Shown here one piece after another: positions 3,178 to 56,347 of a stretch of DNA of 64,000 nt (its first letter is position 1; every line of letters begins with the position of its first letter). Source of the stretch: Utricularia gibba. Taxonomy: Eukaryota; Plantae; Magnoliophyta. Location of the stretch: contig NEEC01000004.1 of the NCBI GenBank assembly GCA_002189035.1, forward strand, positions 1,922,001 to 1,986,000, read 5' to 3'. The notes under the pieces are model-generated. The model saw nothing but the letters and a program-made list of their open reading frames with translations. It was not told the origin of the DNA and did not search any database. The position numbers and the translations under genes were made by a program.

Positions 3178-3523
3178 TGTTGGAAGTGGGAGATGGAAGG
3201 GATTTTTGATGAATGAAAGATAGAGTATTGGGAAGTAACAAAAAGGTAATGCTTATGAGATCACCTTTGATGAAAAACGACTCATGAACAATAAGAATGA
3301 TCGAAAACCTAATTGACACGCATTCCTAGTAGGGTTTATATATACCCACGTAGGTTACCCAACAGTGGGCCACAATCATTGAAAACACACAAAAAGCCCA
3401 ACAACTCGAATCCAACACTTCCATGCTCGAACCCAACACCTTTTTATCTGAAATATGACATTATGGCACAAGATTAGTGCTTCCAATCACCTTCAAGCTT
3501 TGGATTGAGGCTGATCTCCAATA
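3178..3523 (-). repeat. Copia 3' LTR (346 bp)
   Basis: 3327-3523 aligns to 6703-6902 with about 6 substitutions and one small indel. Adjacent to the PPT. Confidence 0.85.
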
Positions 3524-6500
3524 CTCCCCCCCAGACCGAGATCTCCCAACTTGAGAAAGTCTTTCATAGTCATGAGATTCATGTTCTTCCTTGCTAGCTC
3601 AAACTGAACTCTATTCAAACCTTTGGTGAGCCCATCAGCAAGTTGATTCCCACTCTCAACGTACTGCACTTTAATCTTTTTCTCCTTGATGTAATTCCTT
3701 ATGACATGATACTTGATTCTTATGTGTTTGGCTTTGTTGAAGTTCGTCGGATCCTTGGCAATGGAGATTGCAGCTCGATTATCCATAAGCAGATGTGTAG
3801 CTTCCTTTTGTATGAATCCAAGTTTGTTTAACATCTGCCTCAACCAAACACAATAGTTCAAAGCATGTGCTGCTGAGATGTATTCTGCTTCAGCTGTTGA
3901 TTGTGCTTCCACTTTTTGTTTCTTCGAAAACCAGACTATAGGGGTCTTATTTAAAAAGACTCTTGCTATCTTCAGCCATCCCATAATAACTATCTGAGTA
4001 GACTCTAAGTTTCAAGACTGGTTTTTCACCTTCATAGGGATGGAACAATCCGAAATCAGTAGTAGATTTTATGTACTTGAAAGCTCTTTTCACAGCTGCC
4101 ATGTGAGTTTTTGTTGGTTTGTTGAGGAAGCGAGATAAGACATTTACACAAAAACACAAGTCAGGCCTTGTATGCTAGAGATAAATGAGGCTTCCAATCA
4201 TACTTCTATAAGTAGTGGCATCCACATTCTTTCCCTGATTGTTCATCTTCTTTTCCTTTAACATATAGTGAGTAATCACTATATGTTTTTCTGAAACCAA
4301 TACCCTGAAGAAAGTTATCCATGCGTTCATTCCATGTTCTAGGAGCTTGCTTCAACCCATGGAGAGATTTCTTTAACTTCAATACCTTGTCTTCATGACC
4401 TGACACTTCGAAGCCCTTTGGTTGTTCAACAAAAACAACCTCCTCCAACACACCATTCAAGAACGCAGTCTTGACATCCATGTGATGCACTTTCCATCCA
4501 TGGGCAGCTGAAATGGCAAGAAGTACTTTAATCGTGTCAAATCTTGCTATTGGTGCAAAAATCTCATGAAAATTTATTCCTTTGATCTGACTATATCCCT
4601 TGGCTACTAATCTAGCTTTATATTTGTTGATAGAACCATCTGCATTCATTTTGGTTTTGAATAACCACTTGAGGCCAATAGGTTTGAAACCCCTATCCTT
4701 GGGTTTATCAACTAACTCCCATGTTTCATTTTCAAAGTATAGAATTCATTTCTTCCTTCATGGCCTCTCTCCATTTCGGATTTTGTACAGCCACTTCAAA
4801 TGATGTTGGATCTCCTGTCAATAATCCAGTCAAAATATCAGCTACAGCATCTTGGACATCATCATTCAACTTGGAGAAACTTATTGTAGAAGCCTTGTTT
4901 CTTTTGCTTATTCTAATGTTAGTAACATGACTATCTTCATTATCTATTGAATCTCTGATGTTTTTGTGTTTCCTTCTTTGCCAATCACGATCAGATGAGT
5001 AATAATCTCATCAGTATCAGGTTCCTCTCCATCAGATTCATCTGTTGATGAGTCTTCTGCATTCATGCCTTGCTCCTCTTCTGGGATTTCGAAATTCCCA
5101 TCTGAATGTTGATCATTAGCCTGATGAGATTGTCCATATAGGGGTTCAGAGTTTGATTTTGAATTCTCATTGGACGAGCCATCTTGATTTGTGACCTTCT
5201 CCTCCTCTGGAGCTGGAAAATTGTCATCTGAATGCTGATCATTTACTTGATTTGAATCTTCATGAACGAGTTCTGAAGTTTCTTGGTTTGTTGAATTCCT
5301 GGAAGAGAAGTTTTGAGGCATGTGTGTCCAGAGGTCTCCTTTTCCATGGGTGTTATGCCTTCCATGACTTTTATAAGCTTCTGCATCATTCAGAGAAATG
5401 CAATCATCAATTGAAGTATACCTTGCACCTTCATCAAAAGTGACATCATGGCTGAAGATAAATTTCTTCTGTTGAGGTAGATAAACTTTATATCCCTTGG
5501 TAGTGTTGCTATAACCAACAAATACACCAAATACAGATTTCTTATCAAGTTTTCCTCGTTTTTGGTTTGGTACATGAGTAAAACACAGACTACCAAAGAT
5601 TCTGAGATGATCAACCTTTTTAATATAACCATGCCATTTTTCATGGGCAGTTTTTCCACTAATCGCCTTTGAGGGAAGCAAGTTCAATAGATATACAGAT
5701 GTAGATACCGCTTCAGCCCAGAAATTCACAAGAAGATCTTTCTCAAACAATAGGCATCTTGACATATCAAGGATTGTTCTGTTTCTCCTTTCACATATAC
5801 CATTCTGTTGTGGAGAATATGGTACGGTGAATTGATGCATGATTCCCTCATTTTCACAGAACATTCTCATGCTATTATTGTAGAATTCACCTCCATTGTC
5901 TGATCTAATCATCTTCAAAGAGCATCCATTTTGATTCTCAATCATCACTTTGAATTTTCGAAAGATATGAGGAACTTTTGACTTGCTTTTAAGAAAGTAA
6001 ACCTAACAATAACGTGAATAATCATCAATGAATGTAACAAAATATCTACTCCCCCCTAATGAACATTCCTTAAATGGTCCACAAACATCTGTATGCACAA
6101 GCTCTAATTTCTCCTTTACTACTGAATCATTGGAATAAAAGGGCTTTCTACACTGTTTACCTTGATGGCACACTTCACATATGGCATCGGCAAACTTGAT
6201 GTCTTTCAATTCCAGTACTTCCGTATTCTTTTGCAATATTTTCAGATTGTTGTGCCCAAAACGTTTGTGCCAAAGGCTACTTTGATCCTGAAGTGAGAAA
6301 ATACAACTTTTATGATCACTGACCATGATTTGGTAAAGGTTGTAGGTGGTCAACACAACATCAAATTCAATCTTTGTTGATTGACACTCTGCAATATCAT
6401 CAAACAGATGTTCAGAGATGGCTTGATACAAGGCATCCATTGCTTCATCTTTTCTCTGTTGAAGATACTCAGCTTCCTCTTGTTGTTCTGATGTGGATTT

Positions 6501-6702
6501 GCTTGTTATTGCAATAGCCGGAATCTTCCTTTCGACAACATCCCAAATCTTTCTGACCCGAAGGTAGCTACACATCTTTTTGGCCCAGCTTCCATACTCA
6601 GAACCATCAAATATTGGAGGTCCTCTACCAGATGCCATCATAGCCACCGTTTGACAAGCTTTGGCTTGATACTTGGTAATCCACTAAGTAAAAAACGCTG
6701 AA

Positions 6703-10681: not shown

Positions 10682-13600
10682 TGTTGTTACTTCGAACAAC
10701 TAATGCAAATGCACTGCATATCTTAAGATCCGATGCCACAATTAACCACTACACAGAGTATATAAATGGAAATTCCTAATATCGTTGCAAATAAAAATAG
10801 AAAATCCGTATCAAATAAATTTATAATCCCTAATCTATACAAAATACAAATTTGGAAAACTTGTATAGTGGATATCGGGGTCGATCACGAAGAGCTTGTG
10901 CTTGCTAAGTGTTTTAGTACATGCATAATTTCGGATAACAGTAGGTCTTAGTCTAAGCTCGGACTAACAGTGGTAAACAAGTTTCTACGTTTAGGTAACA
11001 GGTACTGGTTTTGACTCAAACTAATACGAGGACGTCTTAAGGGTCTGCGGGTGGTGTTATGCTAAACTTCCTAATTCAATTTATTATCTTCCTACACTCA
11101 CAACTTCAAATAACCTAAGTTTACCTAGGTCATTCATCATATTTTTGGCTTAAGCTAGTCCCCAATGTCATAACCCACATTGCAATTAGGTCTACTCGCA
11201 TGCAAGGCATATAGAACTAGGTCTACCCGGTTCTACTGGTTCTATCTTGGACTAACACATACTGCTCCCGTCTTGGTTTGTTGGTCTACCTCTAAACCAA
11301 GCATCTAAATTGTGAAACTACTTGCTTCCCTCCTTAGGTCTACCCATGGTTTGTAAGAAACAAGAGTTAAGGAATACACATAAATTTCATCATCAAACCT
11401 AAGCACACACCACACCACTTCACCTTAAGGCATCCCTAAGACTCTAGCCACTCATGCTTGGGAAATAAAACACGATTTCATTCATGTAAGTTGACCAAAA
11501 TGGCAGAAACATTGTAAATAAGTCAAATGCAGAAACTCTAAATGTTCAGAAAACGAAAAGTAGATAAAGATTGTTCTTCCGCTCGTTAGCTACTGTTCAA
11601 CGCTCGGAACAGTAGCGCTGGACTCGGCTCCGGTGCTACTCTTGGTGATGAAGGCCTTCCTTCCCCCCTCCTGGTTTTTGTTTTTCCCATTGGGGAAGAA
11701 GACCCCCTTTTGCGTCCCCCTTGCTATCTTTTTCCCTAAACTTCCCGCTCTCCTTCTTTTTTCTAAATTAATTTCCTTTTCTTTTGCTTCACTCCATTGC
11801 ACTATTTCTAACTGCCACTACTGTTCTTGATCGCCAGTACTGCTCCTGGCCTGAACTTGCAAACTGAGGTGGCAGCAGAGCAATGCCCTTTGTCCTTCTT
11901 TGGATTTTGCGCCCTTTTTCGCTTGTTTTACACGCTTGCAAGTCTGATTTTCGGCTCATTCCCTGCTGAACTTACTGAAAAATCAGTAACAAGAGTTGTG
12001 GACTAAATCAAAGGATTTAGTCCACTTTTCAACATAATCACATATGATTAACATAAACACCACTAAAGCATGAAAAACCACATTTATCTAACCTAAAACA
12101 TAATAAAATATAACTATTTTGCATTATGAATTTCAGGAAAAATGTATGTCATCACATTATGCTACAACGACACGAGATTTGTCCCCAAGTCCTAGCTAAA
12201 ACTAACAGGAAACTAACTTCGTCAACGTCAATGATAAACAAAAACAACTTTGAAAAAATTCGGATGCATGAGCTATAGGAGTGCTGGTGTGCATGTCATG
12301 TATCACTCAATGTGCATGAATAAATTTCTCTTGGGGAGTGTTTTCGAATATTAATTCCTCAAGTTGATACGTTCAAAACCGCTTAGGACTAGGGTTGCCA
12401 ACTCTTTTCTTTCCTCTCTTTTTTTCTTCTTTTTTTTTTCAATAGTGAAGGGCAGCTCGTTCTGAATTGATCCGGGTATAATGTCATGGCCTTTCTTGTG
12501 AAAGAGTGTTTTTCAAGCACCCAAACCTTATAACTCCAGGCCTCCTTCTACTCCTCCGGATCAATCCATCCCTTCTTACCAATTCACCACTTATTGAATC
12601 CGCACATGCTTTTCTATTATGTGCTGCTTTTCATGACTTTGATCTCAACATTTTTTTTTGGTACTGCTTTTCTTTCTTTTTCTTCTTTTTTTTCTAAGCT
12701 GGCAACCTGTCCCAAAACAATTGTGAAGTTTATCAACTCAAGTGAAACTAATCTAGATCACACTTCCTAGGTTTCTCTAATCATGCACATGCTCTTATAA
12801 AATCAAAGGTAGAACATGCTCTCAGGTATATAGAAGGCATAGAAAGTTCATACATCCAAATCCTCTCATAGTTGCAATGTTCAATCATGTGGCCATTCAA
12901 ATTAGTTCACTAACTGGAAACAAAACAAACAAGCAAGTACTCGACTATTCCTAGCACAAACTAATAGACACATATACGAGCAGCATCCTAAGGAAAAGTA
13001 AAACTAAAAAGAAAAACGAAAATAAAACTACGCAAAATAAGTTCAGCAGCAGGTTACTTGTTCAGGGAGGAGTTTATCACTCCCTGTTTCAGTTCTTGCA
13101 CTTCACGAATTAAATCAGACATTTTCTCATTCAATTCTTTGATCATTTCCGGGCAGCAGCATCCTGTGTTGTTGTGCTTGGAGGTTGCAGGAGCAGGGGC
13201 ATTTGTGTTGCCTTCTTCAGGGATAGACTGTCTGCAAAGACCTGCCAAAGATCTAAAAACAAACCCACTTCCTTGGGCTTTGATTAGTCCAGCAACTTTT
13301 AATGAAACTTTTAATGAAATAAGCATCTAAAGGCACTGTCTTAGATTCAACATGAAAATATTCTAATTCAGACAGTTTTTCAATGCATAAAATATGAGCA
13401 AGATGCATAATAATGTTGCCAAAACTCAAATGTTGAATTTTCGTGCACCTATAGTCTCTAGTCATTTGTTCAGCAATCATGGCACCTAAGTTTAGAGAGC
13501 GTTTGTTCATAATGCACCACATAACAAATAATTCATGCTTATAAAGAGAATTAAATCCCACAGTTCGTCCAAAAAGAGTTGTGATGACAAGAATATGAAC

Positions 13601-13744
13601 ATAATGCATAACCGGATCAACAAATAAGTCAGTCTTAGTCCTTTTTGCCTTAAACTCTATAGCATGCTGGTCGGTCAGAATAGCATAAATTTCCTCAGCA
13701 TCAAATTCATCAGGGTAATCAAAAAGGGATGTTTTAGTCCCCAT
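10682..13744 (-). mobile_element. Athila-like remnant: accessory (env-like/plant transposon protein) ORF, 3' UTR and ~1.5-kb LTR (10682-12224)
   Basis: ORF 13253-13744 (MHYVHILVITTLFGR...ELFVMWCIMNKRSLNLGAMIAEQM). The LTR reads TGACG...AACA on minus and shares GTGTCGTTGTAGCATAAT with the LTR starting at 42251. No clean TSD. Confidence 0.6.
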
Positions 13745-16790: not shown

Positions 16791-17829
16791 TGGTAAAGTC
16801 TTCGATAACATTTGGGTTATATATATACCTATGGTCTACATCTAAGGAAATGAAGCAGAAAGAACAAATCAAAACTAACAACAATGTACAATAAGACATA
16901 TGTAATCGACAAGTAATCCAAGCACCAAAGCCCTCACATACTAGTGAAATCGTTGGAGATCTCGTCGCGTGCTAGCACCGCATTCCTGTAGATGTTGTCA
17001 GTGAGGAAGCGGGAAAACGAATTGTGATATAAAGGGGTGGGAATTTTGAGAAGGGATATATTGATATTTTCATGTATACATTCATCATATATTTAATTTT
17101 ATATTCACACATCAAACATATTTTTATCTTAAATTCAAATAAATTAAACTCATTAACCAAATTCAAATAATTTTCTAAACTTATAAAATCTATTTATCTA
17201 AACCCAAATAAATTAAACCTGAATTTAAGTATTACCCACCAACTAAACATGACATCAGCATATCAACACTTTACACAAACAAAATGAAGTAGAACAGATA
17301 AAGCATAAATGATGGATCAAGAATAACCCTAGGGGACGGGCAGATATTTTTAGGGCGGCCGCTTAACAATTTCCACGTCCAGAATGGTGGCGGCGGGTTT
17401 TCATTACATGGACGTCTGACAAATGCTTTTTATGACATCATGTCTTTTCCTTAATGAAACATATATTGTTATAATAATTGTGTCCCATTTTCTTTTTGGG
17501 TTAATATGTGTCTGCATAATAAAAAGTAAGCGCTACAGTGGGTAATCAGTAATTACAAGAAGAAGGTATTCTATCTAATTTTTTTGATAAATAGTTGTTT
17601 TAAAAACTTATCGATTAGTTATACAATCACAAATAAAACTCAATTTAGTATTTAACTAAATAAATTAAGTAGAGGCGTTTGATTCACCGGGTTCCGGACG
17701 GCTCAACCTTTGGATTTCTAAAAACTGCGTGCTACCAGAAATTTCGTTTCTGGGTAGGTTGACTGGACTTTTCTGTTTTACTTGTGTACGACAACAGACG
17801 CCCGTCACCTTACGGTGCTTCCTTTTCAT

Positions 17830-17837
17830 TACATAAA
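17830..17837 (+). promoter_or_regulatory. Candidate TATA element of OSC-1 (TACATAAA; same at 31929-31936 in OSC-2; canonical TATATAAA at 48546-48553 in OSC-3)
   Basis: Orthologous position 86-87 bp upstream of the ATG in all three copies. Confidence 0.45.
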
Positions 17838-17916
17838 CCACTCACTTATCACAAGTCTCTCCACTACCAAGCCACACATAACACACCCACGCACACCCAG
17901 AGAGAGAGAGGAAGCC

Positions 17917-20900
17917 ATGTGGAAGCTGAAGATAGCGGAAGGGAAAGATTCGCCTTATCTATACAGCACAAACGGGTTCGTGGGAAGACAGATCTGGGAG
18001 TTCGATCCTGAGGCCGGGACGCCGGAGGAACGGGAAGCTTTTGAGGATGCTCGCCGGAAGTTTCAAGAGAATAGGAAGCATGGGTTTCATTCATGCGGTG
18101 ATATGTTCACGAGAATCCAGGTGCTTGATTGGAAGGAGAGGCTACTTGGTGAATTTGGGATCCAGTATTTTGGTTACCAATTGCGTTTCCACGTTTACAG
18201 CTGAAGAAGGAGAGCGGGATTGATCTACTGAGCTTGCCGCCTGCGAGAGTCGGAGAAAACGAGGCCGTCAGCTACGAAACGGCGACGGTGGCCGTGAGGA
18301 AAGCATTGCGTCTTAATCGCGCTATTCAGGCGGTGGACGGTCATTGGCCGGCAGAGAACGCCGGCCCAATGTTCTTCACACCACCCCTGGTACGTGGCAG
18401 CTCGAAGGATACCCTTCTCCTTTCATTTTTTTTTTTAAACAAACTTAATTATCCTGTAATTTCCACTTTTTTTTTTGTTGTACAGATAATCGCACTGTAC
18501 ATAGGTGGAGCCATTAATGCAACTTTAACTTACGAACACAAAAAGGAGATGATCCGTTACATCCTCAATCATCAGGTACTTTTTCGAATGATTTTGTAAA
18601 TTAAAATTTTCAAAACATATTTATTAATCATTTACGTTTTACTCTTTAATGTATTTACCTTTTTTACATTTTTATTAATAACTTATTTTTAGTACTGATC
18701 TATATTAAAAATTTATCTTTATTTTCATCTCTAAATTTTAAATTATAAAATTAAATTTCAAATTATTAATTTAAATAATTTAAATCATAATCTTCAATTA
18801 AAACCTTAAAAATATGATATTATAACTTTAAACTAACCTAAATCAAAATAATAAAATTTATTTATCTTTATTTTAATCTCTAAAATGTCCAAAAACTTAT
18901 TAATATATTATACCCAAAGTATAAATACTGAATTTAAACCTTCAATTGAAACAATAAGGTCTGAAAATAAACTATATTTTTAATAATATTAATATATGAA
19001 AAAATACATCTAATAAATTTATTAAAAATAGAATACATAAAGAATCATAAAGATAAAATAAAATACAAAAAATATCTCTACTTTTATTAATATTACAATT
19101 TTTTTTATAAGATAATATAAATAAAAAAAGTAAATACAAAAAAGTTGAGATATTTACAAAGATAAAAGTATATTATCAATTATATTCTACAATTCAGATA
19201 AAACAATAACAAATTTGAAAACAAGAGTAAAATGAAAATGTTTTTAAAAAACTAGAGAATTTAACCTATTATCTTGTACTCTTTCTAGATTAGATTCTAA
19301 TTAATTCTCTATTTAACCTAATTGTGGTTTCAAATTATGTAACACATTTGTGATTATGACATGATAGAACGCGGATGGCGGATGGGGATTTTACATAGAG
19401 GGGCATAGCACCATGATCGGATCAGCCCTCAGTTATGTCTCGCTGAGGTTACTAGGGTTGGGCCCGGACGATGCGGACGGTGCCGTCGCCAAGGGCCGAA
19501 AATGGATCCTCGACCACGGTGGAGCAACCGGCATTCCTTCCTGGGGAAAAGCATACCTTTCGGTAATTTCATTCCGTTTGTAGGTATTTGTTTGTACGTT
19601 TCATGGGTTGCTAAAACTATATTTGACCAGGTACTTGGAGTGTACGGCTGGGATGGGTGCAACCCTCTTCCACCAGAGTTCTGGTTGTTCCCTTCAGTTC
19701 TTCCTTATCATCCGGGTATGATTCTTCTACAGGGAAACCTACAAGGAAGCTTTGTTTGCCTGATCCCATTCTAATCAGTAGTTTGAATACAAAAATGCAG
19801 CAAAAATGTGGTGCTATTGTCGTACAACATACATGCCAATGTCGTATTTGTATGGAAGGAAGTTCCATGGTCCTCTGACGGACCTGGTCATGTCCCTCAG
19901 ACAAGAGATCCATGTGAGGCCGTACCATCAGATCGATTGGAACAAGGCTCGCCATGATTGCTGCAAGGAGGACGTGTACTTCCCCCACACCTTCGTACAG
20001 GACTTGCTTTGGGATGTTCTTAACTATTGCTCTGAGCCCTTCATGAGGCGATGGCCGCTGAATAGGATACGGCAGAAGGCTCTTGACAAGACGATCAAGC
20101 ACATGCGTTACGGCGCAGAGGAAAGCCGATACATGACCATTGGATGTGTGGAAAAGGTACGTGCGTACATGTTGTTTTCAAGATTACAGCAATATGGTTT
20201 CTCTGTGAGGCAGAGCACATGTGAGTTTGTCGCAAATTTTTATGTGTTGCAGTCTCTACAAATGATGTGTTGGTTTGCCCTTGATCCAAACTGCGAGGAG
20301 TGGAAGTACCACATTGCAAGAGTTCCTGATTATCTGTGGCTAGCAGAGGATGGCATGAAGATGCATGTTTGTTAACTGACTTTACATCTGCATCAACTTC
20401 CATTCCCTTATCAGTTCTTTGATTGGAAATTTACTTGTTTGAATGAAGAGCTTTGGAAGTCAACTATGGGACTGCGTACTTGCAACTCAGGCAATACTCG
20501 CTAGTGGGATGACAGAGGAGTATGGTGACTCTCTAAAGAAAGCGCATTTCTACATCAAAGAATCCCAAGTATGATGATCCATCTATGAACTTCAATTGCT
20601 TTCTCATTTCACTTAGCTTTTGTGAAGGTGGTTTGATTCTTGGTTGAAATGCAGATAAAAGAAAATCCGAAGGGAGATTTTGAAAACATGCACCGGCATT
20701 TCACAAAGGGAGGTTGGACGTTTTCCGATCAGGATCAGGGATGGGTTGTATCTGACTGCACAGCTGAATCACTCAAGGTAGGACTAAACTTCACAAACCC
20801 ACAATCTCTTCCGAATTTAGAAACGCAATAGGGAGAGTCCTCTTTCCCTATGACACTCAATGAGTTGCGCTCTATCTGCTATTCCAGTGTCTGCTTCTGC

Positions 20901-22295
20901 TATCCCAAATGCCAGAGGAAATTGCAGGGGAAAAGGCAAAAGTGGAGGGTCTCTATGAAGCTGTAAACGTACTGCTCTACTTGCAAGTAAGCATGGCTGA
21001 TATACACATCAGGATTTCTTTAATACCTATGGGTTTGCAACTAATCGAAAATTCCGACGATCATCCAGAGTCCTCTGAGTGGCGGATTTGCGCTATGGGA
21101 GCCTGCAATTCCACAGCCTTACTTGCAGGTAAACAATTATCACGTCAAGATATTAGCACACATACTCTTCATCCAATATGCTCATCTCAGAACATTTCGC
21201 AGGTGTTGAATCCATCCGAACTCTTTGCTGACATAGTTGTTGAGCAAGAGTAAGATTTCAACTGCGTTCTTTGGTGGTTCAACAAGAAAGATAAATAACA
21301 CATGTATGTGTATGCAGGCATGTAGAATGCACTGCATCCGTCATGCAAGCACTGGTATACTTCAAGCGCCAGTATCCCGGACACCGTGAGAAGGAGATTG
21401 AGCTCTCCATTGCAAAAGCAGTACACTATCTACAAGAAAAGCAATGGCCTGATGGCTCATGGTGAGCTGTCAGCATACTGTGATCTACTCCACCGATGCA
21501 TACAGCAACAACTCAAATCTGGTTGCGTTGCAGGTACGGCTACTGGGGAATCTGCTTCATCTACGGCACATTCTTCGTGCTTGCAGGACTGGCTTCGGTC
21601 GGAAAGACGTACGAGAACAGCGATGCCGTCCGAAAAGCCGCCAACTTCTTCTTGTCCATACAAAACGAAGAAGGTGGATGGGGAGAATCCCTCGAGTCCT
21701 GTCCCTCTACGGTACTCACTATACATACTTGTTCATTTCAATAGGATGAATGGCGGCCAGATTGCGTTCTTATAAGCTTTCCATTGTTGCAGAAATACAC
21801 TCCTCTAGAAGGAAATCGGACCAACTTGGTTCAAACATCCTGGGCCATGCTCGGACTCATGCTTAGCGGGCAGGTTCGTTATACCGCACTTAAAATAACA
21901 GTGAAATCTTTTAACATATTGTAATCATTCTTTTGTTCTACGAAATGATCCACTCATTTCCACCAATACATTGTCGCATTTCTTACAAACGGAATCTGTG
22001 CTTCCCTTTTAGATGGAAAGAGACCCAAAGCCACTGCATAGAGCAGCCAAGTTGCTGATCAATGCGCAAATGGGGGATGGCGATTTGCCTCAGCAGGTGA
22101 AGCTTAAAACACATCTTTCCAGAAACAAGAAACCTAGTTTATGTGTTGCTTTATACATCATATGACATGCTCTCGCAGGAAATCACGGGAGTGTTCCAGA
22201 AGAACTGCATGCTCCATTACCCTCTACACCGGAACATTTTCCCATTGTGGGCGTTGGGGAAATACAGGAAGCGAGCATGGCCAGGCCAGATCTAG
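17917..22295 (+). CDS. OSC: Oxidosqualene cyclase copy 1 (dammarenediol/mixed-amyrin-synthase-like), intact, 761 aa
   Basis: Exons 17917-18120, 18201-18389, 18486-18575, 19368-19562, 19631-19715, 19801-20156, 20253-20366, 20449-20568, 20655-20777, 20888-20986, 21069-21128, 21203-21249, 21318-21461, 21534-21711, 21793-21873, 22013-22096, 22179-22295. Total 2286 nt, all GT-AG, open frame. Motifs MWCYCR, SDCTAE (D485), VECT (C565) and QW repeats. Confidence 0.95.
18586..19275. mobile_element. AT-rich non-autonomous Mutator-like insertion in OSC-1 intron 3
   Basis: Intron 3 is 792 bp versus 92-93 bp in OSC-2/3. Insert flanked by near-direct repeats GTACTTTTTC (18576-18585) and GTACTCTTTC (19276-19285), with degenerate inverted ends. 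Confidence 0.55.
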
Positions 22296-30240: not shown

Positions 30241-32015
30241 AGAAACTTTCATATTTATTATATGATTTAATAAATGACATATTTACATTATTTATATTTT
30301 AATAAACATATATAATATGATTATAAAAATATATTTTTTGTAATTGTTGGATTTGACATGTTCTCGCATGCTTAGAAATAAATATAATTTATAAAAATGC
30401 TAATAATAATCTGAAGTTTACTTTGCAACGACATCACGGGTTCGAATCGTAGTGGATTGACCCAATGGATATTCGGATTGATTGTTGTGCCCATGTCTAC
30501 AAGGCATTTATCGATCAACATTTATTTTAAAAAGTATTTAATTTTTTTAAAATTTTGATAATTTTATATGTTAATTATGCCAATTCGATAAACTTATTGG
30601 GTTAATTATGTTAATTTGTCACACTTTATGGGTTAAATATGTAGATTTAAAGAACTTTAAGGGTCAACAATATCAATTTATTAAACTATAAGGGTCAAAT
30701 ATGTCAAAATATTGGGTTAAATATACTAAATGAACACTATACATGGGACCAATAGTAAACTTATTGGGTTAAACGGACTCCATTGTAAAGTTATATAACT
30801 CTTCGTTGGATCAAATATGCCCTATTATAATACTGTATTGGTCAAATATGTCATGCAACAAATTTTTTAAAAGTTAAATATGTTATTTTATAAATATTTT
30901 GGGTCACATATGCGGAATTGGTACTGGTTCAAATCAAATATGTTAAATCGGTCATTTTGTTATGAGTAAAAAATGTCAAATTTTCAAAATTTTAGGTCAC
31001 AAATGACATCACCCCACCCTAGTATGGTACTTATAAATTTGTCGTATCCTAAAGATAAATTATTAATATAACAAGATAAATGATTTAATATTAATAATTC
31101 CAAGATAATATGCCACACTTTTATGACTCCGTGCGATGATTTCAACACAAGGTTGGTGTGTTGTTCCTTACAAAAGAGTCAAAGCATTTTTTTTTTTTTA
31201 GTTCATTCTTGAGTGCAATTTGTACCAATCCAGTTAGGTAAAAAAAAATCAAAGTTTGGTGTATAAATTTAATGTTGGGACGAGGGGTGTTCTAATTTGA
31301 TCATGATTCGATATTCATTTCTTTTAATTTCTTTCTTCGCTTATCCATCACATCCGTTGATGAATGTCAGGATAAGAGGCCTCTTGCCGGGCCCATTCTG
31401 CTGTGCATTTATCACAGTTTTCTTTCGGTATATCAACACTTCACCCAAAAACATGAAGTAAAAAGAGATAAATGCAGGAATGATGGATTAAGAATAACCC
31501 TAGGATGATGGAAACCGTCAGATACTTTCAAAAAAACAAAAAAGGTTTCAGGGTGGCCGATTCAACAATTTCTCGTCCAAAATGGTGGGCGGCGGCGGGT
31601 GAGCATCAACCCGAGTAGCGTTGAGAGTTGGGAGCCATGGAAGTCTGCTAAATGCTATTTATGACATAATATGTCTTCTCCATTATGAAACATATATTGT
31701 TATAATATTGTGTCACTGATGATATTGCGTCCCATTTTCTCCTCTTTTAATCGTGTGTCTGCATAATAAAACATCAGCGCTAGAGTGGGTAATCAGTGCT
31801 TACAAGGTGTGTCTGCGTGCTAGCAGAAATTTCGTTTCTGGGTAGCTTGACTGGACTTTTCTGTATCATCATTAGATGACTTGTGTACGACAACAGACGC
31901 CCGTCACCTTACGGTGCTTCCTTTTCATTACATAAACCACTCACTTATCACAAGTCTCTCCACTACCAAGCCACACATAACACACCCACGCACACCCAGA
32001 GAGAGAGAGGAAGCC

Positions 32016-35000
32016 ATGTGGAAGCTGAAGATAGCGGAAGGGAAAGATTCGCCTTATCTATACAGCACAAACGGGTTCGTGGGAAGACAGATCTGGGAGT
32101 TCGATCCTGAGGCCGGGACGCCGGAGGAACGGGAAGCTTTTGAGGATGCTCGCCGGAAGTTTCAAGAGAATAGGAAGCATGGGTTTCATTCATGCGGTGA
32201 TATGTTCACGAGAATCCAGGTGCTTGATTGGAAGGAGAGGCTACTTGGTGAATTTGGGATCCAGTATTTTGGTTACCAATTGCGTTTCCACGTTTGCAGC
32301 TGAAGAAGGAGAGCGGGATTGATCTACTGAGCTTGCCGCCTGCGAGAGTCGGAGAAAACGAGGCCGTCAGCTACGAAACGGCGACGGTGGCCGTGAGGAA
32401 AGCATTGCGTCTTAATCGCGCTATTCAGGCGGTGGACGGTCATTGGCCGGCAGAGAACGCCGGCCCAATGTTCTTCACACCACCCCTGGTACGTGGCAGC
32501 TCGAAGGATACCCTTCTCCTTTCATTTTTTTTTTTTAAACAAACTTAATTATCCTGTAATTTCCACTTTTTTTTTTGTTGTACAGATAATCGCACTGTAC
32601 ATAGGTGGAGCCATTAATGCAACTTTAACTTACGAACACAAAAAGGAGATGATCCGTTACATCCTCAATCATCAGGTATTTTTTCTAAATTAAGTTCTGA
32701 TTAATTCTTTAATTAACCTAATTATCTTTCCAAATCATGTAACACATTTGTGATTGTGATATGACAGAACGGGGATGGAGGATGGGGATTTTACATAGAG
32801 GGGCATAGCACCATGATCGGATCAGCCCTCAGTTATGTCGCACTAAGGTTACTAGGATTGGGGCCGGATGATGCGGACGGTGCCGTCGCCAAGGGCCGGA
32901 AATGGATCCTCAACCACGGTGGAGCCACCGGGATTCCTTCCTGGGGAAAAACATACCTTTCGGTAATTTCATTCCGCTTGTAGGTATTTGTTTGTACGTT
33001 TCATGGGTTGCTAAAACTATATTTGACCAGGTACTTGGAGTGTACGACTGGGATGGGTGCAACCCTCTTCCACCAGAGTTCTGGCTGTTCCCTTCAGTTC
33101 TTCCTTATCATCCGGGTATGATTCTTCTACAGGGAAAACTACAACGAAGCTTTGTTTGCCTGATCCCATTCTAATCAGTAGTTTGAATACAAAAATGCAG
33201 CAAAAATGTGGTGCTATTGTCGTACAACATACATGCCAATGTCGTATTTGTATGGAAGGAAGTTCCATGGTCCTCTGACGGACCTGGTCATGTCCCTCAG
33301 ACAAGAGATCCATGTGAGGCCGTACCATCAGATCGATTGGAACAAGGCTCGCCATGATTGCTGCAAGGAGGACGTGTACTTCTCCCACACCTTCGTACAG
33401 GACTTGCTTTGGGATGTTCTTAACTATTGCTCTGAGCCATTCATGAGGCGATGGCCGCTGAATAAGATTCGGCAGAAGGCTCTTGACAAGACAATCAAGC
33501 ACATGCGGTATGGCGCAGAGGAAAGCCGATACATGACCATTGGATGTGTGGAAAAGGTACGTATGTACATGTTGTTTTCAAGATTACAGCAATATGGTTT
33601 CTCTGTGAGGCAGACCACATGAGAGTTTGTTGCAAATTTTGTGTTGCAGTCTCTACAGATGATGTGTTGGTTTGCTCATGATCCAAACTGCGAGGAGTGG
33701 AAGTACCACATTGCAAGAGTTCCTGATTATCTGTGGCTAGCAGAAGATGGCATGACGATGCATGTTAGTTTCACTGATTTTACATCTGCATCAACATCCA
33801 TTCCATTTTCAGTTCTTTGATGGGAAATTTACTTGTTTGAATGAAGAGCTTTGGAAGTCAAGTATGGGACTGCGCACTTGCAACTCAAGCAATAATCGCT
33901 AGTGGGATGACAGAGGAGTATGGTGACTCTCTAAAGAAAGCGCATTTCCACATAAAAGAATCCCAAGTATGAACTTCAATTTGCTTTTTCATTTCACTGT
34001 AGCGTTTGTGAAGGGTGGTTTGATCCTTGGTTGTAATGCAGATAAAAGAAAATCCGAAGGGAGATTTTGAAAGCATGTACCGGCATTTCACAAAGGGAGC
34101 TTGGGCGTTTTCCGATCAGGATCAGGGATGGGTTGTATCTGACTGCACAGCTGAATCACTCAAGGTACTAAACTTCACAAACCCACCATCTCTTCCGAAT
34201 TTAGAAACGCAATAGGGAGAGTCCTCTTTCCCTATGACACTCAATGAGTTGCGCTCTATCTGCTATTTCAGTGTCTGCTTCTGCTATCCCAAATGCCAGA
34301 GGAAATTGCAGGGGAAAAGGCAAAAGTGGAGCGTCTCTATGAAGCTGTAAACGTACTGCTCTACTTGCAAGTAAGCATGGCTGATATACACATCAGGATT
34401 TCTTTAATACCGATGGGTTTGCAACTAATCGAAAACTCCGACGATCATCCAGAGTCCTCTAAGTGGCGGATTTTCGGTATGGGAGCCTCCAATTCCACAG
34501 CCTTACTTGGAGGTAAGCAATCATCACGCCAAGATATCAGAGCCCACGTACTCTGCATTCAATATGCTCATCTCAATGTTTTGATCATTCCTCAGGTGTT
34601 GAATCCATCCGAACTCTTTGCTGACATAGTTGTTGAGCACGAGTAAGATTTCAACTGCGTTCTTTAGTTGTTGAATAAGAAAGATAAATAACACATGTAT
34701 GTGTATGCAGGCATGTAGAACCCACTGCATCCATCATCCAAGCACTGGTATACTTCAAGCGCCAGCATCCCGGACACCGTGAGAAGGAGATTGAGCTCTC
34801 CATTGCAAAAGCAGTACACTTTCTAGAGGAAAAGCAATGGCCTGATGGCTCATGGTGAGCTGTCAGCATACTGTGATCTACTCCACCGATGCATACAGCA
34901 ACAACTCAAATCTGGTTGCGTTGCAGGTACGGCTACTGGGGAATCTGCTTCATCTACGGCACACTCTTCGTGCTTGCAGGACTGGCTTCGGTGGGAAAGA

Positions 35001-35689
35001 CGTACGAGAACAGCGATGCCGTCCGAAAAGCCGCCAACTTCTTCTTGTCCATACAAAACGAAGAAGGTGGATGGGGAGAATCCCTCGAGTCCTGTCCCTC
35101 TATGGTACCCACTATACATACTTATTCATTACAATGGGATGATTGGCGGCCAGATTGCGTTCTTACAAGCTTTCCATTGTTGCAGAAATACACTCCTCTA
35201 GAAGGAAATCGGACCAACTTGGTCCAAACATCCTGGGCCATGCTCGGACTTATGCTTACCGGACAGGTTCGTTATACGGCACCTAAAATAAAAGTGAAAT
35301 CTTCTAAGTTTGAATGATCCACTCATTTCCACCAATCTCATCTTTAATGCATATACGATATATGGTCGCATTTCTTACAAACGGGATCTGTGCTTCCCTT
35401 TTAGATGGAAAGAGACCCAAAGCCACTGCACAGAGCAGCCAAGTTGCTGATCAATGCGCAAATGGAGGATGGCGATTTCCCTCAGCGGGTGAAGCTTAAA
35501 ACACACATCTTTCCAGAAACAAAAAACCAAGTTTATGCAATGCTTTATACATCATATGACATGCTTTCGCAGGAAATCACGGGAGTGTACATGAAGAACT
35601 GCATGCTCCATTACGCTCTACACCGGACCATTTTCCCATTATGGGCGTTGGGGGAATACAGGAAGCGAGCATGGCCAGGCCAGATCTAG
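32016..35689 (+). CDS. OSC: Oxidosqualene cyclase copy 2, open frame, 761 aa, with Cys565Pro
   Basis: Exons 32016-32219, 32300-32488, 32586-32675, 32768-32962, 33031-33115, 33201-33556, 33650-33763, 33847-33966, 34042-34164, 34272-34370, 34453-34512, 34596-34642, 34711-34854, 34927-35104, 35186-35266, 35405-35488, 35573-35689. All GT-AG. MWCYCR and SDCTAE intact. Confidence 0.95.
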
Positions 35690-35847
35690 AACCCCTCACA
35701 CGAAAATGTTGATAATGGCCATCAAATGTGTTCACCTGTTTTTATATATTTATTATACACCAAACATCCAAATCATATGAGCTAACATGGTTTTCTTAGC
35801 ACAATATCATCAAACCTTTTTACAGGCATTTTTTGAGTCACAATGCT

Positions 35848-35980
35848 CACCGTAAACTTAAAGGGGTTCGCCACATTGAGTAATTACTTTGAGATTTGAT
35901 GACGAAGAGAGGAGGCCATCCTCAGGGTATATAGCATTTGATGGAGGTGAAGTGAATGATGTCTTGCAGTGCACGATGTG
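35848..35980 (+). repeat. Tail of the OSC duplication unit, homologous to 54582-54800
   Basis: Shared CACCGTAAACTTAAAGGGG...GATTTGATGACGAAGAGAGGAGG...GCACGATGTG. Confidence 0.8.
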
Positions 35981-48631: not shown

Positions 48632-51600
48632 ATGTGGAAGCTGAAGATAGCGGAAGGGAAAGATTCGCCTTATCTATACAGCACAAACGGGTTCGTCGGA
48701 AGACAGATCTGGGAGTTCGATCCTGACGGCGGCACGCAGGAGGAACGGGAAGCTTTTGAGGATGCTCGCCGGAAGTTTCAAGAGAATATGAAGCATGGGT
48801 TTCATTCCTGCGGCGATATGTTCACGAGAATCCAGGTGCTTGATTGGAAGGAGAGGCTACTTGGTGAATTTGGGATCCGGTAATTTGGTTACCAATTGCG
48901 TTTCCACGTTTGCAGCTGAAGAAGGAGAGCGGGATTGATCTACTGAGCTTGCCGCCTGCGAGAGTCGGAGAAAACGAGGACGTCAGCTACGAAACGGCGA
49001 CGGTGGCCGTGAGGAAAGCATTGCGTCTTAATCGCGCTATTCAGGCGGTGGACGGTCATTGACCGGCAGAGAACACCGGCCCAATGTTCTTCACACCACC
49101 CCTGGTACGTGGGAGCCTCAACGATAGATATCCTTCTCCTTTCATTTTTTTTTTAAAGAAACCTTATTATTCTTTAATTCCAAAGAAAAAAAATTATATT
49201 TTTTTGTTTTATTGTGATCATGATATTTTCTGGATACAGATAATTGCACTGTACATAGGTGGAGCCATTAATACAACTTTAACCTCCGAACACATAAAGG
49301 AGATGGTCCGTTACATCCTCGATCATCGGGTACTTTTTTCTAATTTAAGTTCTGATTAATTGTCTACTAAACCTAATTAACTTTTCAAATTATGTAACAC
49401 AATTGTTACTATGACATGACAGAACGCGGATGGAGGATGGGGATTTTATATAGAGGGGCATAGCACCATGATCGGATCAGTCCTGAGTTATGTCTCACTA
49501 AGGTTACTAGGGTTGGGCCCGGACGATGCGGACTGTGCCGTCGCCAAGGGCCGGAAATGGATCCTCGACCACGGTGGAGCCACCGGGATTCCTTCTTGGG
49601 GAAAAGCGTACCTTTCGGTAATTTCATTCCGTTTGTAGGTGATTGCTTGTACATTTCATGGGTTGCTAAAAGTTATGTTTGATCAGGTACTTGGAGTTTA
49701 TGACTGGGATGGGTGCAACCCTCTTCCACCAGAGTTCTGGCTGTTCCCTTCAGTTCTTCCTTATCATCCGGGTATGATTCTTCTACAGGGAAGACTACAA
49801 GGAAGCTTTGTTTGCCTGATCCCATTCTAATCAGTATTTTGAATACAAAAATGCAGCAAAAATGTGGTGCTATTGTCGTATAACATACATGCCAATGTCG
49901 TATTTGTATGGAAGGAAGTTCCATGGTCCTTTGACGGACCTGGTCATGTCCCTCAGACAAGAGATCCATGTGAGGCCGTACCATCAGATCGATTGGAACA
50001 AGGCTCGCCATGATTGCTGCAAGGAGGACTTGTACTTCCCCCACACCTTCGTACAGGACTTGCTTTGGGATGTTCTTAACTATTGCTCTGAGCCCTTCAT
50101 GAGGCGATGGCCGCTGAATAAGATCCGGCAGAAGGCTCTTGACAAGACGATCAAGCACATGCGGTATGGCGCAGAGGAAAGCCGATACATGAGCATTGGA
50201 TGTGTGGAAAAGGTACGTATGTACATGTTGTTTTCAAGATTACAGCAATATGGTTTCTCTTTGAGGCAGATCACATGAGAGTTTGTTGCAAATTTTTATG
50301 TGTTGCAGTGTCTAGAGATGATGTGTTGGTTTGCTCATGATCCAAACTGCGAGGAGTGGAAGTACCACATTGCAAGAGTTCCTGATTATCTGTGGCTAGC
50401 AGAGGATGGCATGAAGATGCATGTGTGTTTCACTGATTTTACATCTCCATCAACTTCCATTTCCCTTTCAGTTCTCTCTAATGGGAAATTTACGTGTTTG
50501 AATGAAGAGCTTCGGAAGTCAAATATGGGACTGCGCACTTGCAACTCAAGCAATACTCGCTAGTGGGATGACAGAGGAGTATGGTGACTCTCTAAAGAAA
50601 GCGCATTTCCACATAAAAGAATCCCAAGTATGAACTTCAATTTGCTTTTTCATTTCACTGTAGCGTTTATGAAGGGTGGTTTGATCCTTGGTTGTAATGC
50701 AGATAAAAGAAAATCCGAAGGGAGATTTTGAAAGCATGTACCGGCATTTCACAAAGGGAGCTTGGGCGTTTTCCGATCAGGATCATGGATGGGTTGTATC
50801 TGACTGCACAGCTGAATCACTCAAGGTACTAAACTTTACAACCCTCAATCTCTTCCGAATTTAGAAATGCAATTGGCAGAGTCCTCTTTCCGTATAACAC
50901 TCAGTTAGTTGCGCTCTATCTGCAATTCCAGTGTCTGCTTCTGCTATCCCAAATGCCAGAGGAAATTGCAGGGGAAAAGGCAAAAGTAGAGCGTCTCTTT
51001 GAAGCTGTAAACGTACTGCTCTACTTGCAAGTAAGCATGGCTGATATACACACAAGGATTTCTTTAATACCGATGGGTTTGCAACTAATCGAAAACTCCG
51101 ACGATCATCCAGAGTCCTCTGAGTGGCGGATTTGCGCTATGGGAGCCTGCAATTCCACAGCCTTACTTGCAGGTAAACAATCATCACGCCAAGATATCAG
51201 AGCCCACGTACTCTGCATCCAATATGCTCATCTCAATGTTTTGATCATTCCTCAGGTGTTGAATCCATCCGAGCTCTTTGCTGACGTAGTTGTTGAGCAA
51301 GAGTAAGATTTCAACTACGTTTTTGGTGGTTCAACAAGAAAGATAAATAACCCACTTTTGTGTATGCAGGCATGTAGAACCCACTTCATCCATCATCCAA
51401 GCACTGGTATACTTCAAGCGCCAGCATCCTGGACACCGTGAGAAGGAGATTGCGCTCTCCATTGCAAAAGCAGTACACTTTCTAGAGGAAAAGCAATGGC
51501 CTGATGGCTCATGGTGAGCTGTCAACATACTGTGATCCACTCCACCCATACATACAACAAACAACTCAAAACTGGTTGCGTTGCAGGTACGGCTACTGGG

Positions 51601-52356
51601 GAATCTGCTTCATCTACGGCACACTCTTCGTGCTTGCAGGACTGGCTTCGGTGGGAAAGACGTACGAGAACAGCGATGCCGTCCGAAAAGCCGCCAACTT
51701 CTTCTTGTCCATACAAAACGAAGAAGGTGGATGGGGAGAATCCCTCGAGTCCTGTCCCTCTATGGTACCCATTATACATACTTATTCATTACAATGGGAT
51801 GATTGGCGGCCAGATTGCGTTCTTACAAGCTTTCCATTGTTGCAGAAATACACTCCTCTAGAAGGAAATCGGACCAACTTGGTCCAAACATCCTGGGCCA
51901 TGCTCGGACTTATGCTTACCGGGCAGGTTCGTTATACGGCACCTAAAATAAATGTGAAATCTTTTAACTTTGAATGATCCGATCCACTCATTTCCAGCAA
52001 TCTCATCTTTAATGCATATACGATATATTGTCCCATTTCTTACAAACGGAATCTGTGCTTCCCTTTTAGATGGAAAGAGACCCAAAGCCACTGCACAGAG
52101 CAGCCAAGTTGCTGATCAATGCGCAAATGGAGGATGGCGATTTCCCTCAGCGGGTGAAGCTTAAAACACACATCTTTTCAGAAACAAAAAAACCAAATTT
52201 ATGCGTTTCTTTTTACATCATATGATATGCTTTCGCAGGAAATCACGGGAGTGTACATGAAGAACTGCATGCTCCATTTCGCTCTACACCGGAGCATTTT
52301 CCCATTGTGGGCGTTGGAGGGAATACAGGAGGCGAGCATGGCCAGCCCAGATCTAG
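48632..52356 (+). pseudogene. OSC: Oxidosqualene cyclase copy 3, pseudogene (W117*, +1 frameshift in exon 17)
   Basis: Exons 48632-48835, 48916-49104, 49240-49329, 49423-49617, 49687-49771, 49857-50212, 50309-50422, 50508-50627, 50703-50825, 50932-51030, 51113-51172, 51256-51302, 51370-51513, 51587-51764, 51846-51926, 52070-52153, 52239-52356. TGG>TGA at 49060-49062. Extra A at 52318 shifts the stop to 52377-52379. Confidence 0.92.
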
Positions 52357-54992: not shown

Positions 54993-56347
54993 CTACGTCG
55001 TCTGCTGCTTGTTCAGGTGCAGGAAGAGGGGGAGTAGGAGAGCAGAGGCTGCGCAAACGAAATTGGAATGTAGAGTGGGTATGACCTGATCGGAGAAATG
55101 CCACAGTGGGAAAATGTTAGGGGACAGGGTATTTCTGGATTCGCTTGATAATGAAATTGCATTCTAAAATTTGATTTTGAGGGTTACCTTAGTGGAGCCT
55201 GAGGTCATTGAAATGGTGGCGGATGAGGTCGCCGGAAGAGAGGAGACTCCGACATTATAAACTAGTGTGCCGTTGGGCCGGAAAAGTCCGTAATTGCGTT
55301 CGGAAGTCGGCCCTGGTTTCATGTTCTCGTTGAACAATGCGAATAGGTAGATTTCTAATTTGCTGCTGGGTCTCAATGGAGTTCCTTCATTCTCCGTTTG
55401 TCTTGCCATCAGATTCCGGCTGTAGACTGCCGCGTTTTCGAGGTTGGCACCGACCTCATCCTCGTCGCCTTTCGAAGGCCACCCTGTTTCTGTCACCATA
55501 ACTGGAATCCCCCTGAAGCCCATTTTCGCCATCGCGTATGTGACAGCATCAACCTGGGCGTACAGCATGTTGTCGTAGTGAAGATTTGTGTTTTCATCCA
55601 CCATCCCTGAATTCGGATTGAAAAGCACGTAATCCAGAGGGATTTTTTCTGGGTTGTCTTTGTAAGCAAAGTACGGATATGCGTTGATCCAAAAAGAGGC
55701 TCTTGTTGCGGACAAGAACCGCAGAATTTCAGGCATTATTCCGGCGAGTTCCTCCCGGAAACTCCCTGCCGACGGCGGATACGATTCCTGGAGAACCGCC
55801 AGTGAATTGGGAGTAGAAACTTCGATGTACTGATCCAATCCAAGCCTCGCCAAAGCGTTGTGAATGTTCACCATAGCCGGAACGAGATAACTCAGGAGCG
55901 CAGTATTTCCGCCGGTGAAAACCTCGTTGCCTACAGCGATTCCGGTTATCCGGGTGGCTGGGAAATACGGCCTGATGTTGGTGTACACCCATTTCATAGC
56001 CTGATTTGGGTCGGTTAAAGTCGGGAACACCTCGTTCTCTACAGTGACAATGATCTCGATGTTGGAGTTAGCAAATGCCGTGAGAGCTCGGCGATCGGTG
56101 TCGTAAATTCGAGTTTTCGTTATCCCTAACGACCTTAGGAGCCGAATAGCCTTCTCCGGCGGCGGCAAATTGTTACCCACTTGGCCGTAGTTAACACCCA
56201 GACATTCTAACAACAAAAAATGAAAGAATCATCAGCACGTCTCACAGACAAGAAGAATAACATAATTTGCAAGAACATACCTGAAAAGGGCAGGAAGATT
56301 CCGGAGAGAATATGTAGAACGAAAATCTTTGTAAGAAGATTCTCCAT
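54993..56347 (-). CDS. Glucan endo-1,3-beta-glucosidase (GH17), signal peptide, no X8 domain, probably GPI-anchored, ~392 aa
   Basis: Exons 56347-56281, 56206-55188 and 55085-54993. GVNYGQVGNNLP start, catalytic VGNEV and VTETGWPS motifs, Ser/Thr-rich linker, hydrophobic tail VIPTLHSNFVCAASALLLPLFLHL. The last exon is inferred from splice sites. Confidence 0.93.

Follow-up and report, generated by a model that had tools for sequence, protein, structure and literature searches.

Can an oxidosqualene cyclase (OSC) work when the second of the two cysteines (Cys) that flank its catalytic aspartate (Asp) has been replaced by proline (Pro)? The question is raised by a 64,000-nucleotide stretch of the Utricularia gibba genome (contig NEEC01000004.1, positions 1,922,001 to 1,986,000 of the forward strand), called the window below, in which three OSC copies lie in tandem. 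The middle copy, OSC-2, is intact and carries Pro at position 565, the site of the second Cys. From this, a sequence-only reading had concluded that OSC-2 is a catalytically dead or weak enzyme kept for another role, a cryptic pseudogene, or an enzyme with unusual initiation chemistry. We instead consider OSC-2, with a probability of about 0.7, to be an active, expressed triterpene synthase with a tolerated natural substitution. The conclusion of a dead enzyme, a cryptic pseudogene or unusual chemistry finds no support in what follows: the site is labile, relatives with asparagine (Asn), threonine (Thr) or valine (Val) in its place are active, and OSC-2 is under constraint.

Codon 565 in the tandem array and in RNA

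The argument rests on the following features, with positions counted from the first letter of the window.

32016-35689, plus strand: OSC-2, intact, 17 exons, 761 amino acids; exon joints from spliced RNA contigs
32016-32219, 32300-32488, 32586-32675, 32768-32962, 33031-33115 and 33201-33556, plus strand: OSC-2 exons 1-6
33650-33763, 33847-33966, 34042-34164, 34272-34370, 34453-34512 and 34596-34642, plus strand: OSC-2 exons 7-12
34711-34854, 34927-35104, 35186-35266, 35405-35488 and 35573-35689, plus strand: OSC-2 exons 13-17
34721-34723, plus strand: OSC-2 codon 565, CCC (Pro), aligned with Cys533 of human lanosterol synthase
34141-34143, plus strand: codon of the OSC-2 catalytic Asp485 in SDCTAE, from the motif scan and gene model; the adjacent Cys486 is kept
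17917-22295, plus strand: OSC-1, intact 17-exon paralogue, 761 amino acids; Cys565 is TGC at 21328-21330
48632-52355, plus strand: OSC-3, pseudogene; Pro565 is CCC at 51380-51382

A motif scan of the window recovers all three copies on the plus strand, each with SDCTAE and MWCYCR. OSC-2 was modelled from RNA, and its exon structure was projected onto OSC-1 and OSC-3. All 16 of its introns are of the GT..AG type and its reading frame is open throughout; the frame, splice sites and SDCTAE motif, described as intact from the DNA alone, are so in the RNA-based 761-residue model, and the numbering of D485 and P565 agrees with the contig joints. Two lesions make OSC-3 a pseudogene. Codon 117 has changed from TGG to the stop TGA (49060-49062), and close to codon 750 a single inserted base pair (~52316-52319) puts the last dozen codons out of frame; every splice site and exon length is otherwise kept. 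The OSC-2 exons match the Pfam domains SQHop_cyclase_N (PF13249, 5.8e-11) and SQHop_cyclase_C (PF13243, 3e-15). The protein has four strict QW repeats (QxxxGxW) at residues 111, 161, 603 and 652, MWCYCR at 257 and SDCTAE at 484-489 with both D485 and C486 in place, and over its full length it is collinear from end to end with named OSCs, at up to 83% identity. By its domains, DCTAE motif and QW repeats, OSC-2 is thus predicted to be a member of the OSC family of class II triterpene cyclases.

The acceptor AG at 34709-34710 precedes exon 13 of OSC-2, whose first base is 34711. Read directly in all three copies, the codons are those first reported: CAT GTA GAA CCC ACT (HVEPT) in OSC-2 and OSC-3, and CAT GTA GAA TGC ACT (HVECT) in OSC-1. 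A phmmer search of the PDB with this 47-residue exon places its residues 1-47 opposite positions 530-576 in human lanosterol synthase (1W6K), which sets Pro565 against Cys533 of that enzyme and, in the plant OSC 8J5Z, against Cys567. The proposed equivalence to human C533 and to C564 of the Euphorbia tirucalli beta-amyrin synthase (EtAS) therefore stands, and the second Asp-activating Cys is absent from OSC-2, with Pro565 instead. These two enzymes, the references for Asp-Cys-Cys initiation, share fold and catalytic Asp with OSC-2; however, they keep the Cys and have tyrosine (Tyr) three residues upstream of it, where OSC-2 has Pro and histidine (His).

Could the codon itself be wrong? We aligned contigs of public RNA runs from the same organism to positions 31800-35900. 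In each of the sets X1 and X3, a single contig (2,470 and 2,381 nucleotides, respectively) matches all 17 OSC-2 exons with 0 mismatches. X5 and X6, from two other studies, contain spliced OSC-2 contigs with allelic single-nucleotide polymorphisms outside 34721-34723; in the X5 allele, 7 non-synonymous and 6 synonymous coding differences from the window leave the frame intact, and the X6 allele likewise retains CCC and the OSC-2 reading frame. At 34721-34723, none of X1, X3, X5 and X6 has any other letter. The general chance that paralogues collapse in a gene-converting tandem array might suggest an artefact of assembly or sequencing, with TGC as the true codon. Such an error is scarcely credible, because three studies, including two whose alleles differ independently elsewhere, give the same letters in their RNA contigs without TGC being seen, and OSC-3 has the same codon.

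The contigs of these three studies also establish that OSC-2 is transcribed and correctly spliced. In X1-X4, the share of OSC-2 31-mers is 0.51, with 0.498 expected for a complete OSC-2 mRNA, and that of OSC-1-specific 31-mers is 0.19, with 0.174 predicted from OSC-2 mRNA alone and 0.487 if OSC-1 mRNA were present. OSC-2 is the copy seen in RNA, since these shares fit its mRNA and not that of OSC-1. No OSC-1 mRNA was detected in the RNA contig sets, in which specific 31-mers do not rise above the OSC-2-derived expectation; contigs prove presence and not absence, and the silence of OSC-1 is only suggestive.

Lability of position 565 among relatives

Relatives were collected by an exhaustive HMMER search with the 47-residue exon and two word-indexed searches with the relatives P0031 and P0147; proteins of the window itself were absent from the matches listed. 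The nearest proteins, ~83% identical, come from the Lamiales (Buddleja, Andrographis, Striga, Primulina), and sequence places the window OSCs in an asterid clade of mixed-amyrin and dammarenediol II synthase-like enzymes. In an alignment of 115 near-full-length proteins, including the three window copies, Asp485 is kept in every one of the 114 sequences spanning its column, and H562, the mark of the His-type HVExT motif, is present in 110 of 115. The flanking Glu is invariant and the flanking Thr at least 90% conserved (alignment of 78 sequences). Position 565 behaves differently: it is Cys in 71 of the 115, Asn in 20, Pro in 13, Thr in 7, and Ser, Ala, Ile or Val in 1 each. Without the window copies the counts among 112 relatives are Cys 70, Asn 20, Pro 11, Thr 7 and 1 each for Ser, Ala, Ile and Val, so that 42 of them (~38%) lack the Cys. 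A hand count of exon-level matches puts the Cys as missing in ~4 of ~85 Tyr-type versus ~6 of 21 His-type sequences. The Cys thus appears to be kept nearly always outside the His-type clade, and not to be a defining feature inside it. The sequence-only reading fails at this point because it assumed universal conservation of the Cys, which does not hold in the clade. It had also known of no characterised OSC with Pro here; there are 11 Pro-bearing proteins among the 112 clade relatives, and no assayed one was found among them.

A tree built without the trait column 565 requires at least 22 state changes at this position, 15 of them between Cys and another residue, and 5 independent origins of Pro. 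These fall in Lactuca, Dorcoceras and Andrographis, in an Ipomoea clade of ten members, and in OSC-2/3 of the window. Within the Lamiales/Gentianales region of the tree, where they group with the amyrin synthases CrAS and IaAS1 and with enzymes of Olea, Andrographis and Buddleja, the three window copies make up a separate clade (local support 100%); C565P therefore arose after the local duplication.

The side chains of Val and Pro donate no hydrogen bond, whereas Asn can still bond Asp. What, then, does the Cys contribute? The second Cys of OSCs is assigned a hydrogen-bonding role toward the catalytic Asp (PMC10086137, PMC9081704). In the Gynostemma dammarenediol synthase GpDS, both C564A and C486A caused ‘significantly reduced activity’, whereas D485N was fully inactive (PMC11369773). 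Oat SAD1 C563Y, earlier cited as blocking the initiation of cyclisation, could not be confirmed in a literature search, in which ‘C563Y’ matched only unrelated papers.

Several characterised enzymes lack the Cys altogether. The Catharanthus roseus mixed amyrin synthase CrAS (AFJ19235.1, P0159) and the Ilex enzymes IpAS1 (ARS25031.1, P0166) and IaAS1 (AIS39793.1, P0275) have Asn at the equivalent of 565. Expressed in yeast, IpAS1 makes alpha- and beta-amyrin at >5:1, and IaAS1 is reported at 4:1, placing the Ilex amyrin synthases at ~4-5:1 (PMC5408325). Like OSC-2, these three belong to the asterid clade and have a His-type HVExT motif, SDCTAE and MWCYCR but no ‘activating’ Cys, and CrAS is 80-81% identical to OSC-2; they differ in carrying Asn and having demonstrated products, whereas OSC-2 carries Pro and is known here from sequence and RNA. 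A second case is P0226, which we identify as Ipomoea nil OSC9 by 8 matches at 8 named residues (L548, F549, T561, S724, Y725, Y256, W216, W254). Its Thr561 aligns with position 565, and in Nicotiana benthamiana it gives euphol, tirucallol and delta-7 isomers (Stephenson et al. 2025, PMC12858397). OSC9 shares the clade and a non-Cys residue with OSC-2 and falls within the Pro-bearing Ipomoea clade of the tree; it differs in its Thr, its tetracyclic products and its origin in the Solanales, farther from OSC-2 than the Lamiales relatives. The third is Codonopsis lanceolata ClOSC1 (WGT93812.1, P0245), with Val at the 565-equivalent, which is a taraxerol synthase active in erg7 yeast (PMC10056628). 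Here a member of the same clade has a non-hydrogen-bonding residue at the Cys position, as OSC-2 does, although it is Val and not Pro, and the protein sits on a divergent long branch with 5 deviations at conserved sites. Because enzymes with Asn, Thr or Val are active and GpDS C564A is only reduced, the Cys is best seen as a helper and not as essential.

Pro itself recurs in Andrographis paniculata (QJA18437.1/XP_051128397.1), Dorcoceras (KZV28816.1), Lactuca sativa (XP_023737952.1) and Ipomoea paralogues. These proteins resemble OSC-2 in being full-length members of the same clade with HVEPT, HIEPT or HLEPS and D485 kept; they differ in having acquired Pro independently of OSC-2, and most Ipomoea copies also lack the Cys of DCTAE (SDGTAE). 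Between the Pro-bearing orthologues of I. nil and I. triloba, which are intact 15-exon genes with Gly for the DCTAE Cys, dS is 0.148 and dN 0.060, a ratio (omega) of 0.41 that differs from neutrality at p = 6e-7. Pro at 565 therefore appears to be kept by purifying selection in Ipomoea, and we infer that Pro is itself compatible with catalysis.

Some details of these relatives may be added. The Pro-bearing Ipomoea OSCs (P0235, P0241, P0220, P0195 and others; loci L001 and L002) mostly lack both Asp-flanking thiols, and I. nil and I. triloba have two long introns at matching positions (after exons 7 and 12). In Andrographis, a single 2.82-Mb contig holds a tandem OSC set with Cys (P0146/P0149), Pro (P0277) and Thr (P0165/P0276), and the Pro and Thr forms are also separate GenBank proteins (QJA18437.1, QJA18438.1). 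One candidate for an active Pro enzyme, P0001 (HIEPT), was rejected as a chimeric model of two partial OSC copies without a DCTAE exon.

The Andrographis Pro-bearing protein P0277 served as the structural proxy for OSC-2. Its AlphaFold model has a mean predicted local distance difference test score (pLDDT) of 83.5 and a predicted template modelling score (pTM) of 0.87, and sets Pro564 third in a helix spanning 562-578, in a block with a mean pLDDT of 94. The first helical turn is known to accommodate proline well, since the backbone NH groups there take no part in intrahelical hydrogen bonds.

Might Pro tune the enzyme? It could reshape the initiation site so as to alter the substrate (e.g. 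toward 2,3;22,23-dioxidosqualene), the A-ring conformation or the product, making 565 a specificity-tuning site. The position lines the active-site cavity, T561 of OSC9 was chosen for mutagenesis by Stephenson et al., and the 22 or more state changes fall in a clade that makes amyrins, dammarenediol, taraxerol, taraxasterol and euphol/tirucallol. Yet no correlation between residue and product has emerged: the Asn-bearing CrAS, IaAS1 and IpAS1 and the Cys-bearing ClOSC2 all give ordinary alpha/beta-amyrin mixes, and the main text of PMC12858397 does not describe T561C as altering the OSC9 profile. We regard such tuning as rather improbable.

Constraint on OSC-2 and the case for activity

Pairwise omega between the window copies is ~0.39. 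The changes unique to OSC-2, 9 synonymous and 12 non-synonymous, give an omega of ~0.37, which departs from neutrality (p = 0.023). At 197 positions the family is at least 97% conserved, and OSC-2 departs from the consensus at two of them (N20G and Y158L), as do OSC-1 and OSC-3. Enzymes of proven activity show 0-5 such departures, and OSC-2 is within their range. Pro-bearing proteins as a group are no worse, averaging 1.23 deviations over these positions versus 1.79 for Cys-bearing ones. A gene that is transcribed, spliced, intact and constrained does not fit the proposed cryptic pseudogene.

Several observations nevertheless weigh against an active OSC-2. The pseudogene OSC-3 has an omega of 0.42, close to the ~0.37 of OSC-2, and omega therefore cannot tell whether a gene still works or has lately been disabled; as a discriminator between these two copies, dN/dS is uninformative (both ~0.4), so that the comparison suggested earlier shows non-neutral change in OSC-2 and no separation from OSC-3. 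OSC-2 also has Q723R in the nearly invariant GDFPQQEI, as well as T473A. A survey of the lettuce and Ipomoea literature, the supplements of PMC12858397 and accession look-ups found no assayed Pro-bearing OSC. ClOSC3 and ClOSC4 are expressed OSCs that gave no product in yeast (PMC10056628), and contig depth is no gauge of expression level. On residue 723 itself, Arg723 (35485-35488/35569-35573) replaces the second Gln of GDFPQQEI in both OSC-2 and OSC-3, and the boundaries at which the X5 and X6 contigs align suggest Gln alleles, so that the residue may be polymorphic in the species.

Taken to their limit, these points describe an OSC-2 that is transcribed but catalytically dead or severely weak, its Asp485 too weak an acid for epoxide opening once a rigid Pro has taken the place of the Cys565 thiol: a young expressed pseudo-enzyme, or a gene being lost. 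The loss of much activity on Cys-to-Ala replacement in GpDS and the hydrogen-bonding role that the literature gives the Cys favour this view, as do the pseudogene status of the sister OSC-3, which has the same Pro block, the relaxed omega of ~0.4 that is not different from that of OSC-3, and the existence of expressed OSCs with no detectable product. It must, however, accommodate Val-bearing ClOSC1, which also has no donor and is an active taraxerol synthase, as well as five origins of Pro and purifying selection on the Pro copies across Ipomoea. Moreover, OSC-2 is intact, its alleles keep the frame, its conserved sites are near normal, and it is seen in RNA while the Cys copy OSC-1 is not. 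We therefore hold a dead or severely weak OSC-2 to be unlikely, though the most serious of the alternatives; a weakened enzyme is possible.

If OSC-2 is active, Asp485 would protonate the epoxide as usual, with Pro standing in for the second-shell Cys565 at a site prone to evolutionary change in the clade. Judging from the model, this Pro would be structurally tolerated in the first turn of its helix, and activation of the Asp would presumably fall to the retained Cys486 and the remaining polar network. Turnover may be somewhat below that of a Cys enzyme. From clade membership and MWCYCR, the product is probably an ordinary amyrin-type mix of pentacyclic triterpenes. A bolder proposal is that in this clade another group than Cys565 now activates the Asp: perhaps His562, which is specific to the clade and lies on the same face of the helix, or Cys486 by itself. 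Position 565 would then be free to vary and to fine-tune initiation or the product formed, and Pro565 would be an adaptive change in product or substrate use; we give this little chance.

With OSC-2 as a tolerated variant, an apparent catalytic defect at this locus becomes ordinary natural variation, and OSC-2 becomes the array's probable working and expressed triterpene synthase. Beyond this locus, the survey shows that the second Cys, although the literature counts it among the groups that initiate OSC catalysis, is dispensable across a whole clade of biotechnological importance that includes amyrin, dammarenediol, taraxasterol and euphol synthases. The Cys has given way to other residues at least 22 times, in some cases to ones unable to form a hydrogen bond, which warns against inferring OSC inactivity from the motif. 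The natural variants (Cys, Asn, Thr, Pro and Val, and the Cys/Pro/Thr tandem set of Andrographis) are ready material for gauging the contribution of the second Cys.

The mosaic array and its surroundings

The relationship of the three copies changes along their length. In exons 1-3, OSC-1 and OSC-2 are 100% identical, and their homology begins only ~190 bp 5' of the ATG:

31813-32685, plus strand: OSC-2 5' tract from ~190 bp upstream through exon 3, nearly identical to OSC-1 17725-18585

This shared tract suggests either gene conversion or a recombinant origin. In exons 13-16, OSC-2 (34711-35488) is instead nearly identical to OSC-3 (51370-52153), and Pro565, which sits in this common block, therefore arose a single time in the array. 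Sequence comparison thus portrays the array as a gene-conversion mosaic. Intron 3 of OSC-1 (18576-19367) is 792 bp long, compared with 92 and 93 bp in OSC-2 and OSC-3, respectively, and the insertion of ~700 bp in it starts where perfect OSC-1/OSC-2 identity stops.

Outgroup polarisation identifies Cys as the ancestral state at 565 in the array. At 25 sites OSC-1 differs from OSC-2 and OSC-3 together, and 16 of these are derived in OSC-1, among them F720L, E600Q, K343R, R513G, I569V, I570M, Y729F and M730Q; five are derived in OSC-2/3 (Y446H, T473A, C565P, F622L and Q723R). The differences at 569 and 570, earlier counted as changes in OSC-2 next to C565P, are thus real but arose in OSC-1. F720L of OSC-1 lies in GDFPQQ (exon 16, 22013-22096), where Phe is found in 123 of 123 other sequences. 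Exons 13-17 have an omega of 0.72-0.99 between OSC-1 and either OSC-2 or OSC-3, a rise that falls mostly on the OSC-1 lineage, since most differences are derived there. Of the paralogues, the Cys-bearing OSC-1 is accordingly the more derived; it may be acquiring a new function, be confined to certain tissues or be in decay.

Is the array part of a biosynthetic cluster? Among the long open reading frames of the window there is no cytochrome P450, UDP-glycosyltransferase or acyltransferase, though multi-exon genes could escape such a scan. Upstream of the array, on the minus strand, lie open reading frames of a copia-type long terminal repeat retrotransposon (gag, integrase and reverse transcriptase; 3493-6647) and a fragment of a plant transposon protein (13253-13744). 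Downstream of OSC-3, also on the minus strand, a single open reading frame of 350 amino acids (55164-56216) forms a GH17 beta-1,3-glucanase-like gene.

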